The notes under the pieces were generated by a model that saw nothing but the letters and a program-made list of their open reading frames with translations, ran no database searches and was not told the origin of the DNA. A stretch of DNA of 63,979 nucleotides, counting the filler, from Octopus bimaculoides (Eukaryota): the NCBI RefSeq assembly GCF_001194135.2. It is 7 parts of 7 records of this genome, joined end to end, with 100 filler letters (N's around TTAATTAATTAA, not from the genome) between each part and the next. Parts side by side here need not be neighbours in the genome. Positions count along the whole stretch, not along the records: positions 23,284 to 42,147 come from NC_068983.1; 6 more parts are not named here. One strand, given 5' to 3'. A program made the position numbers and the translations under genes. Below, one piece after another: positions 5,241-38,167 of the stretch. Numbering within the stretch: position 1 is the first letter of the stretch; each line of letters starts with the position of its first letter.

Positions 5241-5983
5241 AACACAATCTATCAACACATTGTGGCTTCTGTTCACCAGAAAACATTCAATCCACGTGCT
5301 TCTTTCAGTTTCCGCCCACCAAACCCATTCACAGGGCTTTGATCGAACCAGAAGTCACTTGCCAAGATACCACGCTGTGGGACTGAACCCGGGACCAAAC
5401 AAACTTTTTAGCGCACAGCCACGCCTGCGCCTGTACTTTTTTAAAGCTATAATATAAATTATTTAAATGAAATATGAGTCTGCTTCCTGTGTACTTTTCC
5501 CCTGTGGTTTTATTTCCGTTAACCTCATTTCAACGTTCTTTGCAGCAGGGCTAACGAAAGGGTCTCTACATGGTCACTCAAAAAGCTAGAAATAGCAGCC
5601 ATATTTCCCTCAGACAACATCCTCTGTATTAGGAAGCGAGAAACGTCATACCAGACAATCCAGACCTAAATTGATACGATTATAAGACGAAATGACCATG
5701 GCTTTGATCATGCGTCATTGAGAAATAAAACAGTATAAAAAACATGAAGTTAATACCGTTTGCCTTCATTTGGATTGGGTTGGATTACCTATCCAGTCGA
5801 CTACAGGACGAGGGCCTCAGCATGTTCTTTCCACCAACTACGGTCCGATGTGGAGGCCGTGAATTTGGGCTTGAGATCATGCTGGTTTGATGAGCCTACT
5901 CTCGCACACTGGCTCGACATGGGTTGGCAGAGGGGTGCAGTTTCTTTTTTTATACTCTTACCCAAGAGCAGTTAAATTGATGA

Positions 5984-6127
5984 TGCCGACCCCAGTGCTC
6001 TCAACAGGTACTTATTTCATTGACCCCGAAAGGATGAAAGGCAGGCTCACCTCCGGCGGAATTTGAACTCAGAACGTAAGGACTGATGAAATGTGCCCGG
6101 CGTGCTAACGATTCCGCCAGCTCGCCG
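5984..6127 (-). mobile_element. tRNA-derived SINE family A, partial
   Basis: Reverse complement of the GGCGAGCTGGC...GTTCTGAGTTCAAATTCCGCC head that recurs more than 10 times in the window. Confidence 0.8.
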
Positions 6128-6149
6128 TTATTTGCCTTCATAAGTATGT

Positions 6150-6530
6150 CTAAAAGAAGTTTGCTTCTCAACCACATGGTTTCGGTTTCAGTCCCACTGC
6201 ATGGTACCTTAAACAAGTGTTTTCTACTACAGCCCAGGCCGACAAAAGCCTTGTGAGTGGATTTAATGAATGGAAACTGAAAGGAGCCCATTATGCGTGT
6301 GTGTGTGTGTGTGTGGGCGTGTGTTTGTGTATGCGCGTGTATGTCTTCGTCTTTGTGTTTGTTCCACACCACGGATTGACAATCACTGTTGGTCACATTT
6401 AGACATAAGAGACCAACAGAATAAGCGCCGGGTTTTAAAGCAAAAAATAATGGGGGTCGATTCGTTCGACTAAAAAATTCAGGCGGTACCCCAGCGTGGC
6501 CGCAGTCAAATGACTGAAACAAAAAGATGG
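6150..6530 (+). mobile_element. tRNA-derived SINE family B with internal (TG)n
   Basis: Head with B box GGTTTCGGTTCAGTCCC, then GGTACCTT...AAGTG, (TG)n and a tail ending GCCGCAGTCAAATGACTGAAACAAAAAGA. Confidence 0.8.
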
Positions 6531-26800: not shown

Positions 26801-28675
26801 AACGAGGTGGTGGAACAATGTTGTTGACAGGGCTATTAGACAAAAGAAACAGGCTTGGAAGGACTGGAAGAATGGTGGTGGAAGAGAATTGTATCAGACT
26901 GCCAGAAGGGAGGCTAGGCGACAGGTTTATTTAGCCAGAGAGGAAGCAGATAAGAAAAAATTTGCCAATGTTCTGCGCCGTGAGGACCCAAGACTTGAGG
27001 TATTTCGTGTTGCAAGACAGTGTGTGAGAGAGAATCGTGATGTCGTGGGAGAGAAATGTGTTCGCATGGATGATGGTACACTTGCACTAAACGAGGCTAC
27101 AAAGAAAGATTGCTCAATAAAGAGAATGAATGGGAGAAAGAGAGTTTGCCGAATGTCGACCCAACAGAAGGACCAGCTATCCGAGTTGACAGTACCATGG
27201 TAGATAAAGCAATTAAGAGTATGAAGACAGGGAAGGCCTCCGGCCCATCAGGAATCACTGCAGAGATGCTCAAAATATCTGGCAGTGTCAGCTATAGCCT
27301 AGTCCCCCGTATTGTTAACCAGGTAATACACGAAGGAGTCATGCCCAATGACTGGTGTAGCAGCACCATAGTCAACTGCTACAAAGGTAAAGGTGATGCT
27401 TTAGATACAAATAATTATAGAGGTATCAAGTTGTTAGATCAGGTAATGAAAGTCACAGAGAGGGTCATAGCCCAACTACTTAGGGAGCGAGTCAGTTTAG
27501 ATGAGATGCAGTTTGGGTTTGTGCCTGGGAAAAGCACCACTGATGCTATATTTCTGGTAAGACAGCTTCAGGAGAAATACCTAGCCAAGGATAAACCTCT
27601 GTACCTGACTTTCGTTGACATGGAGAAAGCCTTTGACAGGGTGGTCAATGAGGAAACTAGGGATAGAAGAATGGTTAGTGACAGCTGTGCGAGCCATGTA
27701 CAGAGACGCTGTCAGTAAGGTGAGGGTTGGCAATGAGTACAGTGAAGAATTCCGGGTAGAGGTAGGGGTCCACCAAGGTTCTGTCCTCAGCCCCCTCCTA
27801 TTTATCATAGTCCTCCAGGACATGGAAACGGTAATGGAATAAAAACTCACTTGCTGAAAGATTCAGATGCAGCACCAAAGATAGCAACTTCATCAGCATT
27901 GGCTTTCAGCTGAAGAATAAGAAAAAGTTATTTTTGGAAAAATAAGAGACAGTGGGTGAATGAATATATAACATATAAGAATATTAAACCAAGCACAGGT
28001 AAAATTTCTCCAGGCTTCACTTCATCATTTCTTTAAAAACACTTTTTGACGAGAGCAAAAATAGATAACACCCACAATCACATAGGTGACTGACTGGTGT
28101 TAGAAAAGTCATTTTAACCATAACAATAGAAATGCAAGCATTAGTGTATCGTTGAGAAGTTTGCTTCTTTCCTTTCCTGAGCATCCAATAACACTGTACT
28201 TATTCCACGTCCTCACGTTGTTGTTTTTTCGTGTTTTTTCTTGCTTACTCTTTTTACTCTTTTACTCTTTTACTTGATTCAGTCATGTGACTGTGGCCAT
28301 GCTAGAGCACCGCCTTTAGTCAAACAAATCGACCCCAGGACTTATTCTTTGAACGCCTAGTACTTATTCTATCGGTCACTCTTTGCTGAACTGCTAAGTT
28401 ATGGGGACGTAAACACACCAGCATCGGTTGACAAACACAGACACACAAACATATACACACACACATATATATATATACATATATACGACGGGCTTCTTTC
28501 AGTTTCCATCTACCAAATGCACTCACAAAGCTTTGGTCTGTCTGAGGCTATAGTAGAAGACACTTGCCCAAGGTGCCACGCAGTGGGACTGAACCCAGAA
28601 GCATGTGGTTCATAAGCAAGCTACTTACTACACAGCCACTCCTACGCCTATATTGCTTGTTCATGTGTGTATTGA

Positions 28676-28722
<47 letters not shown>

Positions 28723-31700
28723 AGGATATGTTGTGGGGATAAGATTCAATGAGGCAGATTGGAGATAGAGAGAAGTGGGGTACAGTGGATGGTGAGCATT
28801 GGTAAGGGAAATGGAATGGTGTTGGGATGATGGGATATGAGGGAGTTTTGTAAGGGATCTCATCTAACCCATCAACTATCCATGAACACATTAGTTACAC
28901 ACTCACTAGATTTAGCAGTGTAACAATTGAATAGTTGATGAGCTAGATAAAGTGCTGACGGAAGCGCAATAACCCTTGAAATAGGTATATATCAAAACAC
29001 TGGGAAATGTTGCTAATCACTATTTCCATCACTTTTGAGATGTTAGCAGTGAAAGCTTATGCAACATCACTTCAGTTTCTTAGCAGATTACCAGATGCAA
29101 CTTTGAGTTACCACAGCACATTATATGCAATTATAGTAGAGTTAAAATGTCTCAGTGTTTCAAGTAGTAGAACATTTTAAGAAAAATAAAGACTTTACAT
29201 TTATAATCTAACAATTTGTGAGTGTAGAGACTGGTACTATAGTAGAAGGTACCTGAAGAGTTGATCCCAAGATTAAATTATGTAACTGAAAAGAAGTTTC
29301 TACAGATTTATGACAGTTATGAAAATGTTATGAAGGTTTAAATAAAGACTTTCTCCACAAATCAAGCAGAAAAATAGATTAGCACGGTATACTCACAGCA
29401 CCTTCAAATCCCTTGAGATTAGGAGTTAACACAGAGTAGATAACATTACTATGTCTTTGAATACCAGCCATCACTTCCTCATGATCACCTAACTGTCAAG
29501 AAAGAAAATAGAGAAAATATGTTAAAAATAAGATAAAATACATCCAGATGAAAGCTTTGTTTTCATTTTGACATATTTTTTACAAATATTTCTCTGAACA
29601 AGAAATAGCTGGAAGATTCTGGAAAGGTTAACATTGTAGAAATTCAAATGTTTTTACCCTGATTGTGAAACCACTCCATCTTTAACTCTATTTCTTAAAC
29701 CTTGTACATAAGAATGTAATTTAATGTAATTTGGTTTTGGAGATTTGGAGTCTAAAATCTAAATGTAATATATAAAGACATTGAGAAAACCAAATTCAAC
29801 ACATTTTTAAAGCAATTCATCGTTTAACGTCCACTTTCCATGCTAGCATGGGTTGGATGATTTCACTGAGGACTGGTGGACCAAGTGGCTACACCAGGCT
29901 CCAATCTGATCTGGTGTCACGTAACTGGCACCCATGCAGGTGGCACGAAAAAAAGCACCTTTAGAGCATTGAACCTCACAGAGGCAAGGTGACCGATGCT
30001 AGTGGCACATAAAAAGTGTCTTTCGAGTATTGGGCCTTACGGAGGCAATGACACGTGATCAGGACCTTTGGCATTACGTCATGAAGACCCATCAAGCCAA
30101 GTGAAATCGTAGTCATGGTAGATATTGGTGTCACACAAATGGCACCCATGCCAGTGGCATGTAAAAGCACCCATTACACTCTTGGAGTGGTTGGTATTAG
30201 GAAGGGCATCCAGCTATAGAAATCATGCCAAATCAGACTGGGGTCTGGTGCAGCCTTCCAGCTTGCCAGCCCTGATCAAACTGTCCAACCCATGCCAGCA
30301 TGGACAACGAACGTTAAATGATGATGGTGATGATTCTTCATCAAAGCAATGACAGCTTCAGTATTTCACATAATCTAAGTTAACCCTTTGGCATTCAGAT
30401 TGCTTTGTCAAATGTAATACTTATTTATTCACAGTTTTAAATTAATCATGCATTGTTTTGAATTAATCATGCATTATCTCATAACTTTGAGATTGCAATG
30501 ACTGATTGTTTATTTTTTTAACACATTGCAGGGTAGGTATGAGAGGCCAGATCTGGCTGGTTTGAACATAAAACAGATAGAATATTTTATCTGGATATGG
30601 TCGGTTTAAATGCTAAACAGTTAAACAAAGTTGAATTACTGAAAGACCTGATGCAGTAATTGACAGAATTCAAACTGCTGACTCGCCATGACAACAACTC
30701 TAGTTTTGTGTAGGCAGATCTATATATAACCTAATGCCAATTCTCCTTTGGAAAATTAATACCTTTGTAATAAACCTGAAAATCACTATTTCATACACTA
30801 AATATATTACCCCTAATGTACCTACCACACACATATCTCATTCAAACAAATATAAGGAATGTTGACTTACTTGTGGCACCCATTTGGGTGAAACAAAACT
30901 TGTTACTTCGATATTAGAAAAGCCTGCCTGGGACAGTTTGTTAATAAATTCAATTTTTGTTGCAGTTGGTATCTTAGTCTGAAATTAGAAGCACAGAAAA
31001 GGTAGAGTTTACATATGTGTGAGTGTGTGTACGTACGTACATACATACGTACATACATACATACATGTTTATTATTATGTCAAGTTTATTCTTAATAAAG
31101 AAATCATTATATATGGCATTAATAACATCTGTGTGTATGTCTCATTTATCAGTCTGTAAGAAGCATATGTGTGCGTATATATATATAGATCATCATCATC
31201 ATCATCGTTTAACATCCGCTTTCCATGCTAGCATGGGTTGGACGATTTGACTGAGGACTGGTGAAACTGGATGGCAACACCNNNNNNNNNNGAGGACTGG
31301 TGAAACTGGATGGCAACACCAGCCTCCAATCTGATTTGGCAGAGTTTCTACAGCTGGATGCCCTTCCTAATACCAACCACTCAGAGAGTGTGGTGGGTGC
31401 TTTTACGTGTCACCAGCATGAAGGTCAGTCAGGCGGTACTGGCAATGGCCACGCTCAAAATGGTGTATTTTATGTGCCACCCGCACAAGAGCCAGTCCAG
31501 GGGCACTGGCAACGATCTCACTCAAAAATCCTACGAAGGCCAGTCAGGCGGTACTGGCATGCAAATGACATCNNNNNNNNNNCTCACTCAAAAATCCTAT
31601 GAAGGCCAGTCAGGCGGTACTGGCATGCAAATGACATCCATGCCGGTGGCACATAAAAGCACCCATTACACTTTTGGAGTGGTTGGCATTAGGAAGGGCA

Positions 31701-34700
31701 TCCAGCCATAGAAAACCATGCCAAATCAGACTGGAGTCTGCTGCAGCCTTTCAGCTTGCCAGCTCTGGTCAAACCATCCAACCCATGCCAGCATGGACAA
31801 CAGACATTAAATGATGATGATGATGATATATATGTATATATATATAAAACAATATATACTACCTTGTAGGTGGGTATATGGAAGAATATGTATATGGGAG
31901 TTGGAAAAGTATATCTACTAGCTTTTTATTTTTTCCAACTGCTTCAATAAATCAACTTTCAAAAGAGGCTGATATGAGTGTAGAATGGGGCCAGCTGTTT
32001 TGTCACGAAATACAGGAAGTAATTTAGAGCCTTCACACAAGCAAAGAAACAGTTAATAAGCTCTGAAATAGTCACTCTCCATCACTTATCATTTCTAAAT
32101 GCTTAATTTTACTCTTCTTTTTATTTCTTATTCTGTTTAGCACTTTCTTCCTTGTAATCTGACTATGAAGAAAGAATTGCAATTTATTGTCAACCAGACC
32201 AATTTTTTGGCGTATTTTGATTATAATTGTATTTTGTCTGTCACTATATGTATGGGTTTAGTTTTGTCTATAAACTGCTGAAAATGACACATTACTTTGG
32301 GTATGCATTCTCGCATTGAGTGCAATGACAGTAGGATCTTACAAAGGACTTATTTAAACAGTGACCTGAGGAGGCACATTTTACACCTTGGATGAATGAC
32401 ACTGATTACACATCTCACCAATATACTACAGGTGTAAAATGTACTGAAACAGTTGTAGTGATTTTAAATAAAGAATGTTGTTCATTCCATTTTCAATCAT
32501 CTATATATATATATATATATACATCAGATTGGAGCCTGGTGTTGCCATCTGGTTTCACCAGTCCTCAGTCAAATCGTCCAACCCATGCTAGCATGGAAAG
32601 CGGACGTTAAACGATGATGATGATGATGATACACACACACACACATGTATGTATCATCATCATGTTCCATAATGGCATGGATTAGACTAAAAAAAATATG
32701 AGGTGCTTCATAAATTTGCATGTCATCCTTGCACAGGGGCCATGCTAATGTTCTCTGTATCATTCCAATTCTAAAATATGCACAGCCACATACATATATA
32801 TATTACACATACGCACACATACAATTTATACATGGACAGTTAAATTTATATTCATTTTTACTCTCAATATTCAGCTAACTAAACAATCTGTTAGTGTTTC
32901 AATGAAATACTGACACAGGGCAACTAATTGAATGGCCTCTTAGTATTTCCAGAAATTCAGCCACAGTAAATATACCAAAGCAGCTAATTCCAAGTTGCAC
33001 ACACATAGAAACATGTAGAGATGGTTGCAAACATTGTTAAATACATTAGAAGATACTTAATATATTATAAATTGTTTATAGAGCAAGATTTGAATGACTT
33101 GCTTTGGTAGAACATCCTGGATATTGACTTGTAATGAAAAATACCTATAGCATCTATCAGAGATTTCGCAATTAGTCACAATATCTATTAAGAGTTGTAA
33201 CTGATTGAATTTCCTTCCAAACATATTTTCATTGTCTAAAAAAATTACAAGCAAAAGCCACTTAATCAGTATTTGAACTTATAATGTAAATGGTTCGAGA
33301 CTAAATACTAAAATGTCTTAAATCAATGTCGTCAGAAACGAAAGACACATTAGATAATGTAGTCCTAGTTACACAGCAACAGCAAAAAAAAAAAAAACGG
33401 AAAGTCACATCCGAAGTATTCTTCATCATAAGTCTGCACACTTAGAACTAATCTGTAACAAAATGCTGTTATTAATACAAATATTTAAAAGTATTCAATT
33501 TTATAGTGAAATAAATAGATAATTTATTAGATCGAAAACATATTCCAGTGAAAACTCAAACTGCTTTACAAACCTTCTCATTTTGAAGGCCGTCTCGTGG
33601 GCCCACTTCTACCACTTTCACAAAACTTGGTAAACCGGCAACCTATAAATGAAGGGAGATTACTCTAATGACTGATTATATCACAACAATCACTACCAGC
33701 ATTCGACAGTCAAAAGCAAAAGATGAAACTATTGAATAATTTTTGTATAATAACAACAACAAAGTTTTTAGTACAATATGATTATAGTTTTCTTTCATCT
33801 TCTATTTCTTATACATACGTTTCAAACGTTCAAACAGAGGCATTTTAGCAGCTAGATCCACAGGATAGTTTACTGGTTCCTTGTTTCGTAGATCATGAGT
33901 TGGTATTTAGTCATATAAGTTGCCTTTCACCATGTCCTTGGACTAAAGATGTAACTCATTTTATTTGTTAGGCTACCAAATGGACATGACTTTCTAAAAG
34001 TTCAAAAAAAAATCTCTGAAAAACAAATTGTCATGATAAAGGCTACGTTTGCATGATTATCAGAAAGTTAATCAAAGAAAACAAGTTCTGATAAGCATAT
34101 GTACAGAGTGAATAAAATATTACTCGTTCTGGATAGTTGACTTTGGGGTTCTTTTTTTTTTCTTCTCTAATAATTTGCAACTGATAGTTAATAATAATAA
34201 TGACCATTTATTTATTTCAGAGGTACAGACTAGAAATTTGAAATGGAGTAGCAAGTCGATTAAAACGACCGCAGTACTTGAGTGGTACTTTATCAACCAT
34301 GGAACAATGAAAGAGAGAGTTGATTTCGGCAGGATTTGGACTTAATGCTCTTTTTAAATGGAACAACTAACATTCGCCTTTGTAGCCACAAGGGTTCTCT
34401 CATACTAATAATAAACATTTCACTATTTACCACTACAGCGGTAGTTATAGGAACAACAATAGTAATATAGCGGCGTAAAATTTTCCGTGTTCACCTTTCA
34501 AATTTTTTTATATATTTTTTTCTCACAAACAAAACCTCCTTGTGCTTTCATTTATCAAAAAGTATATTAAAGGAGATGCAAGGATTGTGTCAGTTTATTA
34601 CTTGAAGACGTTAAAAAAAAAAATGACATGAACACATGGTTTAAAGCATGTTGCGGTTCTCGTCATAATGAAACGAAACAAAATCTCTTCAAGGGTGACA

Positions 34701-37430: not shown

Positions 37431-38167
37431 GTTATGTATTCTTTTGGTTCGTGTTGGGACAATAAACAACTCATTGAAGGTGTTATTATGATTCTATGTC
37501 TTTATTTACTTGGCATGTTTACAAACTGTATATGTATAGCGGAGTGATACACACTGTGCGTATTCGCTTTATTCACAGTTCATACTGTTTACTAAATGCG
37601 CTTAACAAAATAGTACTAATAGTGGGGATGCATTCATATATACGTATGCTTACGCATACACATAGATATGAACATATAACATCCCTTCTTGAAAAAGGAT
37701 CTTTTGGCAATGAAAAAAAATATAGAAGTAATCTCCCTTACACTAATGGATTGTCAGCGCAAGGGTGGCAATCCTGCAGCAGAAACCGTGAGATTGTTCT
37801 GCCCACACACGTGGTTTTCTGCTTCCTAATCTAGCAGAACTAGTTACTATTTACTTTTTTTCTTCCTTTAACGGTATCGATTGGGTGGTAAAATATTCGG
37901 TCTCCATCAGGTGGATCTTGTGCTCCGCACTGATGTCTGAGATGTGCGTAGTGTTGATGTGTTGTTGGGCTGCTGATGGGTGGTTGGTGTTCGTTGAGGT
38001 GATGATTCTGTAGAAGCACGGATTCTGTGTGTGCCGTCATCCGCTGTGGGTGTTGTAGTTCTTGTTGGTGTTGTCACTGATGTTGGAGGTGTTGTGCATC
38101 TCATCCTTGAAAGCTCTGGTGTTGGGTGGATGTGGGCCCTGTTTCGTCTCAGCTGCCTACCAGATTC

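Follow-up and report, generated by a model that had tools for sequence, protein, structure and literature searches.

In intron 2 of the HMGCL gene of Octopus bimaculoides, a decayed copy of U6 small nuclear RNA (snRNA) is fused head-to-tail with the 36 terminal bases of an RTE-type element that is abundant in octopus, and the question raised by this locus is whether both parts arrived together, as one chimeric retrocopy made by a long interspersed nuclear element (LINE), or came to lie side by side in separate events. The window, that is, the whole stretch of DNA that was analysed, comprises 63,979 nucleotides, filler included; the 18.8 kb of it that hold HMGCL are referred to below as the piece. 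The piece matches O. bimaculoides GCA_001194135.2 CM046603.1 with 100% identity, which bears out the cephalopod host supposed in the initial annotation. The HMGCL exons are on the minus strand, and the unit of U6 and tail is situated between exon 2 and exon 3 in the orientation of the gene. The chimera is most likely a by-product of the copying machinery of the RTE-type element. The unit itself shows no sign of function and no apparent effect on HMGCL, and is a neutral fossil.

The concatenated translations of the exons retrieved Octopus HMGCL, and the resulting protein cluster comprised O. sinensis, O. bimaculoides, O. vulgaris and Argonauta hians. The four octopod genomic HMGCL loci (121 kb in total) were used as the comparison set; the labels L001 to L004 are given only with coordinates inside these loci.

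The U6 copy

The Rfam scan of the piece yielded U6 snRNA as the sole above-threshold family (RF00026, 88.1 bits, E=1e-21; 32692-32793, minus strand), with the whole model matched. Local alignment covers nt 12-107 of canonical U6, with 80 of 96 positions identical in O. bimaculoides, and nt 18-107 in both orthologues, while U6 nt 1-11, half of the 5' stem-loop, are unrecognisable. As there is no similarity in the first ~11 nt, we read the copy as 5'-truncated, and the adjacent GTATG (32789-32793) is probably flank or microsatellite. At the opposite end, the terminal T-run (32689-32696) consists of 8 T in O. bimaculoides and reads TTTTTATT in O. sinensis and O. vulgaris. Compared to canonical U6, 7 of the 12 CpG positions and 10 of the 85 other positions are changed (17/97), on the presumption that octopus U6 equals the metazoan consensus there. 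The ACAGAGA and AGC core motifs are kept in the Rfam alignment; full length, an intact 5' stem-loop and constraint, as they characterize a functional U6 gene, are not found in the copy.

Upstream of the copy, two exact TATAAAT motifs are situated 20 nt apart (window 32824-32850), at -52 and -32 of the hypothetical full-length U6 start. The whole piece, with both strands counted, contains only 10 instances of this exact motif.

The tail piece and its source

The T-run is followed by a single A and then by GTCTAATCCATGCCATTATGGAACATGATGATGAT (32687-32653, minus strand), the complete 36-nt piece being AGTCTAATCCATGCCATTATGGAACATGATGATGAT (32688-32653, minus strand). Hence, one nucleotide separates the T-run from the tail hairpin with (TGA)4 at 32653-32687, and U6 and tail have the same orientation. 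The 23-mer GTCTAATCCATGCCATTATGGAA of this piece has 4 mismatches to the family tail GTCCAACCCATGCCAGCATGGAA. The family motif GTCCAACCCATGC(C/T)AGCATGGA occurs in 7 copies with at most 2 mismatches in the 18.8-kb piece, none being expected by chance, and beside these canonical copies the U6-adjacent 23-mer is the only further match at up to 6 mismatches. In 100 Markov-randomised pieces we observed no matches at up to 4 mismatches and on average 0.07 at up to 6; as the 36-nt fragment also ends in (TGA)4, like the family, the match is not due to chance. In O. sinensis and O. vulgaris the tail, GTCCAACCCATGCCATTATGGAAAATGATGATGAT, has 2 mismatches in 24 to the consensus. The better match in these species shows that the homology is real and that the extra differences are specific to O. 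bimaculoides. Thus, the initial annotation, which had described a minus-strand U6 copy ending in its T-run, followed in the same orientation by an RTE-like tail with a (TGA)n end, inside HMGCL intron 2, holds on each of these points.

In comparison with most family copies, approximately 13 nt (AGCGGACGTTAAAC or similar) are gone between the hairpin and (TGA)n; similar deletions were seen in rare family copies (L002 17267, L003 21265). What the U6-attached fragment retains is the inner hairpin, in which one pair is G.U, together with its repeat terminus; the 3' strand of the outer stem is gone. Among approximately 30 independent Octopus insertions, it is the only one where the family homology ends at the 5' edge of the hairpin. 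All other Octopus copies run upstream into the family body (...GTCAAACCG), so that fragments as short as this one are rare.

The tail family is represented by 53 copies in the four loci (~4e-4 per bp), all ending in (TGA)n-like repeats. In the reference LINE copy, the open reading frame (ORF; 40449 to 38766) is followed by a 600-nt 3' untranslated region (3'UTR) with tandem repeats at 38317-38640, and the copy ends in the same hairpin and (TGA)n tail (38166-38240, minus strand; motif at 38198-38219). The family therefore has a short tandem repeat, not poly(A), at its 3' end, and this tail is continuous with a copy encoding reverse transcriptase (RT). The conceptual translation of the LINE has about 1,900 homologues, of which those at full length are single proteins of ~960-1030 aa that combine Exo_endo_phos (apurinic/apyrimidinic endonuclease, APE), RVT_1 and PHD on 3-4 kb contigs and are 44-51% identical. 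The compact single-ORF layout with APE and RT is seen in the homologues only, the window copies being 5'-truncated. None of the protein-database homologues carries an informative clade name, and the architecture was used instead. From the architecture, the simple-repeat 3' end and the literature, we infer that the source of the tail is an RTE-group LINE. In Octopus, RTE LINEs are plentiful and have been active recently (PMC9115989, PMC13282606), among them LINEs with ~600-nt repeat-rich 3'UTRs (PMC9115989), and the 3'UTR of the octopus RTE-2_OV has been reported as mostly repeat, which agrees with the tandem-repeat 3'UTRs in the window. In the latter, we observed repeats of 64-66 nt (4-5 units, 61-80% identical) at 38317-38640 and 31396-31526. 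SINEs (short interspersed nuclear elements) of the tRNA-CORE-RTE type are also described in octopus (PMC13282606). Other tail-bearing copies in the piece resemble SINEs or the ends of 5'-truncated LINEs, and the donor RNA would be that of a LINE or a SINE.

The family tail can be folded into an outer stem, CGUCC/GGACG, around the inner hairpin CCAUG-NNNN-CAUGG. Since the fold energies are no better than those of shuffled sequences (z from -0.7 to +0.2), the support for the hairpin comes from its conservation and from compensatory changes in Argonauta. These changes, noted by inspection and not by a formal covariation test, replace CCATGC..GCATGG of Octopus with CCACGCTGGCGTGG and CCATGCATGCATGG in Argonauta copies (L004 14453, 20924, 17023, 11094). 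They indicate a putative structurally conserved 3' recognition element across Octopoda, of the type bound by the RTs of stringent LINEs.

Orthologues and age

At the orthologous place, U6 is found in both O. sinensis (82 bits) and O. vulgaris (81 bits), and in the three-way alignment the whole unit of U6 and tail is common to these species and O. bimaculoides. In O. bimaculoides the unit differs from that of the other two species by 6.6-7.4%, compared to 7.1% in the adjacent intron. Thus, the unit diverges at the rate of the flanking intron, and there is no constraint. As the three Octopus species share it, the insertion is older than the split of O. bimaculoides and O. vulgaris, dated at 13-33 million years (PMC13282606). 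The non-CpG divergence from canonical U6 of approximately 12% suggests, as a rough estimate, that the insertion is several times older than the split. In the Argonauta HMGCL gene, the intron 2 of which is unalignable, Rfam detects no U6 anywhere.

Flanks and adjacent microsatellites

Both flanks of the unit consist of one type of compound (TG)n(TA)n repeat, oriented alike. The 5' flank is TGTATGTGTGTGTATGTGTA-ATATATATAT, and the 3' flank in O. vulgaris is TGTGTGTGTGTGTATGAGTATATATATATAT; the flank-to-flank identity is 28/31 in this species and 29/32 in O. sinensis. Such compound repeats are found at only ~5 independent loci across the four HMGCL loci, and two of them bracketing the unit therefore suggest a duplicated or split target. 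Between U6 and the tail, within the 135 bp of the unit, there is no microsatellite, flank-like or duplicated sequence.

Simple repeats are enriched beside the tails of the family in general: 16 of the 53 copies (30%) have a TA, TG or CA repeat within 24 nt 3' of the tail, compared to 2.5% of random windows (e.g., window 31189-31200, 31817-31850, 32631-32652). Thus, the 3' junction of the chimera is typical of an ordinary family insertion. The tail-adjoining repeats could reflect either a preference of the endonuclease or repeats made by the insertion itself; RTE-linked microsatellite genesis is known from Lepidoptera, as cited in PMC9115989.

The repeat beside the chimera is a hotspot of insertion. 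In O. bimaculoides, a young 108-nt copy of the tail family was gained at the (TA)n/(TG)n boundary (window 32523-32652), and in O. sinensis and O. vulgaris an unrelated insert of ~390 bp occupies this same place with (TA)n on both sides (L001 ~5870-6262; L003 ~5430-5810). The young copy (32523-32630), inverted relative to the chimera tail, occurs in O. bimaculoides only, the orthologous site of the other two species lacking it. It is not part of the chimera, and this absence speaks against a twin-priming or other one-event origin of both, which is rejected.

Table 1. Features of the HMGCL piece that bear on the origin of the unit (window coordinates).
Feature	Coordinates	Strand	Basis or remarks
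Younger 5'-truncated family copy, opposite orientation, tail to tail with the chimera	32523..32630	+	97% identical to 31189-31281
3' flank: ACATAC ATGTGTGTGTGTGTGT; runs on into (TA)n in O. sinensis and O. vulgaris	32631..32652	-	candidate 3' copy of a target site duplication, or distal half of a split microsatellite
RTE-type LINE/SINE 3'-terminal fragment	32653..32688	-	inner hairpin CCATG-CCAT-TATGG (32667-32680), then AACATGATGATGAT; (TGA)n terminus 32653-32663
U6 snRNA retrocopy, U6 nt 12-107, 5'-truncated, decayed (83% to canonical U6)	32689..32788	-	RF00026 and local alignment
GTATG, taken by Rfam as the U6 5' end; no convincing U6 homology	32789..32793	-	low-confidence 5' columns, 3-nt gap
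5' flank: TGTATGTGTGCGTATGTGTAATATATATATGTATG, compound (TG)n(TA)n that agrees with the 3' flank in type and orientation	32789..32823	-	candidate 5' copy of a duplication
Reference LINE copy, 5'-truncated, frame-shifted; RT and PHD-like Cys motif	38166..40449	-	ORF pieces, Pfam RVT_1

One event or two

Starting from what is directly observed, namely the identities of both parts, the exact junction and orientation, the presence in three Octopus species, the neutral divergence and the continuity of the tail with an RT-encoding LINE, we infer that the unit is probably a chimeric retrocopy that arose in one retrotransposition event driven by an RTE-type LINE, well before the split of O. bimaculoides and O. 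vulgaris. Given 53 copies in 121 kb, the probability that a same-strand family copy begins no more than 2 nt to either side of a chosen position is ~1e-3, and since the tail is attached precisely where U6 naturally ends, in the same orientation, a single event is favoured over chance adjacency. The estimate is lower still if it is considered that this is the only copy cut to the terminal hairpin module. The 5' truncation of U6 is expected of a retrocopy or abortive cDNA, not of a gene relic, and the same compound repeat brackets the whole unit with none between the parts; both features also favour a single insertion.

If, on the contrary, an earlier U6 pseudogene or retrocopy had been joined by a severely 5'-truncated tail fragment landing beside it, or the two had inserted in the reverse order, then the extreme density of the tail family, the proven hotspot character of the microsatellite, which received both the O. 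bimaculoides family copy and the ~390-bp insert of the other species, and the lack of a clean target site duplication (TSD) would be readily accommodated. However, the 5' end of the fragment would have to meet the U6 3' terminus within a couple of nucleotides and in the same orientation, the fragment would have to be the only one so short among ~30 insertions, neither poly(A) nor any other hint indicates how U6 alone was retrotransposed, and no duplicated flank separates the two parts; hence, we consider two independent events unlikely. The same improbable adjacency is required if the copy is a relic of a DNA-level U6 gene with a TATA box, where an RTE-family fragment inserted just past the terminator and read-through transcripts could have acted as a proto-SINE. 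One TATAAAT occupies -32 to -26 of the hypothetical U6 start, the TATA position of U6 genes (probability by chance 0.002 if the exact motif is required and about 0.025 with a relaxed TATA, 0.002-0.03 overall), and the intact T-run and the preserved core motifs would be in keeping with a gene. On the other hand, the loss of the first 11 nt, with the rest 83% identical, is very unlikely at such decay without a truncation or deletion, the region from -25 to +10 consists of microsatellite sequence that mirrors the unit's 3' flank, which a gene relic leaves unexplained, the TATA spacing spans this length-unstable repeat, and no proximal sequence element is recognisable upstream. We treat the TATAAAT as a coincidence, it being the single feature fitting a U6 gene relic, and regard such an origin as very improbable.

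It is also quite improbable that the unit belongs to a multicopy SINE-like family with a U6 head and an RTE tail module, amplified as a whole. The O. vulgaris annotation has SINE classes 'U' (369 kb) and 'U-L1', so snRNA-headed repeats do exist in octopus, and the piece retained is the hairpin and repeat module needed by a stringent RT. However, a strong RNA polymerase III terminator (5-8 T) stands between head and tail, so that a U6-type transcript would normally not reach the tail, an internal promoter is absent from U6, the tail is without its outer stem, and there is no second copy of U6 with the tail in the 121 kb of the four loci. Two metagenome scans for further U6-tail junctions gave 0 and then 13 chance matches, without U6 or the tail family.

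Besides the TATAAAT, several observations weigh against the chimeric retrocopy. The similarity of the flanks is strong when compared to shuffled sequences but equal to the score of unrelated compound microsatellites, and for this reason we do not call them a TSD and use only their co-occurrence and orientation as evidence; moreover, the flank copies are 5-7 nt away from the junctions. Hence, of the TSD proposed as a check in the initial annotation, only the occurrence of the same compound repeat on both flanks is retained. The orthologous site, suggested there as another check, shows both parts together in all three Octopus species and provides no informative empty site, as the Argonauta hians intron 2 (L004 3754-7481) aligns with the Octopus intron only via repeat-family copies. 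The deleted ~13 nt of the tail include half of the outer stem conserved by the family, and recognition by the RT would be questionable if this deletion was already present in the template RNA. Finally, should the genome contain thousands of U6 copies, the tail family is dense enough for a few of them to be expected next to a tail by chance alone.

Possible course of the event

If the unit is a chimeric retrocopy, the RT of the LINE would have bound the 3' hairpin and (TGA)n module of a LINE or partner-SINE RNA, and a nick within or next to the (TG)n(TA)n microsatellite of HMGCL intron 2 would have provided the primer. After copying of ~36 nt, the RT would have gone on to U6 snRNA, entering it at the oligo-U 3' end. 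It could have switched templates there, leaving the tail RNA for U6, or it could have read on along a U6 already ligated to cleaved tail RNA, as in the RtcB model (PMC6789731). With copying halted ~11 nt before the U6 5' end, the product would be 5'-[U6 nt 12-107]-T5-8-[36-nt tail]-(TGA)4-3', subject to neutral decay since then. Template switching and ligation fit equally well and are inseparable from DNA alone. At the junction, the long T-run (or TTTTTATT-A) may derive from an oligouridylated U6 end or from untemplated nucleotides.

Other features of the piece

A LINE RT fragment (RVT_1) is situated at 26729-27842 on the plus strand, antisense to HMGCL. It ends ~10-30 nt from the donor side of the neighbouring HMGCL exon (27850-27909, minus strand) and abuts a 700-N assembly gap (26029-26728). 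Its best O. sinensis match is elsewhere in the gene, with ~85% identity; the fragment may be lineage-specific and unusually near the splice site. Another repeat, of ~220-400 nt (…GGGGACAAACAAGGACAGACAA…CGACCCCAGTGCGTAACTGGTACTT…), is present in two copies, 39500-39720 and 41666-41903, which are 86-97% identical; one of the copies is inside the LINE copy 39078-40449, and related fragments are found at 34253 and 40893. Sub-threshold Rfam matches to mir-297/466/1277 (28659-28726, 31007-31072, 25062-25142) are TA/TG/TACA microsatellites and not microRNA genes.

Significance and comparison with known systems

The locus is a data point indicating that 'stringent' RTE-type LINEs can carry U6 to new sites outside vertebrates, the host here being a mollusc in which somatic RTE activity in the brain is being discussed. 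A wider role, with recurrent capture of snRNAs, through template switching or ligation, by the abundant, brain-expressed octopus RTE machinery and with chimeras seeding the 'SINE/U' classes of O. vulgaris, is conceivable but doubtful. If true, it would extend LINE-mediated mobilisation of snRNA from vertebrates to molluscs; recurrent U6-tail chimeras could then be used as markers to date RTE activity, in the way that U6 pseudogenes are used for L1 in mammals, and would illustrate the first step of SINE birth, in which a small RNA gains a LINE recognition tail. The main value of the locus would come from a genome-wide survey.

The U6/L1 chimeric retrogenes of placental mammals (Buzdin; Garcia-Perez) have been explained by template switching. 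L1 is a 'relaxed', poly(A)-dependent LINE, and its chimeras have poly(A), a usually full-length U6, a variable and often long L1 segment, and clear TSDs of 7-20 bp. The octopus unit is similar in that U6 is followed by a LINE 3' end in the same orientation with the junction at oligo-U, and the same two candidate mechanisms apply, the RNA-ligation model by RtcB having been put forward for U6/L1 chimeras by Moldovan et al. 2019 (PMC6789731). In contrast, it has no poly(A), full-length U6, long LINE segment or clear TSD.

The combination of an snRNA-derived 5' part with a LINE-derived 3' recognition tail is shared with snRNA-headed SINEs, such as SINEU of crocodilians. The classes 'SINE/U' and 'U-L1' annotated, without detail, in O. 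vulgaris (PMC13282606) belong to the same comparison. Unlike the amplified snRNA-headed SINEs, the octopus unit is a single locus with a terminator between head and tail. Outside mammals, a non-L1 LINE RT is also responsible for chimeras in Magnaporthe grisea, where bipartite and tripartite chimeric retrogenes are made by the MGL LINE (PMC2104539); the phenomenon is thus a general one, although the host is a fungus, the LINE is of another clade, and the partner RNAs are different.

The closest parallel is provided by the chimeras of stringent LINEs in vertebrates. Doucet et al. 2015 described 40 platypus U6-L2 chimeras, in nearly all of which a 5'-truncated U6 precedes a short piece of L2 with (TGAA)n at its end and the TSD is either 1-9 bp long or absent, and also platypus U6-Mon-1 chimeras; in Anolis, there are three chimeras with the RTE-group RTEX-2 as well as U6-L2 and U6-AnolisSINE2, and in opossum two tentative U6-RTE_Mdo/RTESINE1 cases without TSDs (PMC4476161). 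These authors concluded that stringent LINEs (L2, RTE) yield U6 pseudogenes only as chimeras (PMC4476161). Hence, the RTE-driven U6 chimera proposed in the initial annotation stands as the best explanation on indirect evidence, short of proof, whereas its novelty was overstated, U6-RTE or U6-L2 chimeras being already published for Anolis, platypus and, tentatively, opossum (PMC4476161). No report of U6-LINE chimeras in molluscs was found in the literature searched, and the octopus unit is possibly the first one noted in this phylum. It differs from the vertebrate set in its host, in the (TGA)n terminus and PHD-containing ORF of its LINE family, and in being one old copy with a ~13-nt deletion inside the tail and microsatellite flanks. 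At the same time, it has the same composition as the vertebrate chimeras, with the 3' end of a 5'-truncated U6 joined to a short LINE or SINE 3' piece that terminates in a simple repeat, and with at most a small or unclear TSD.

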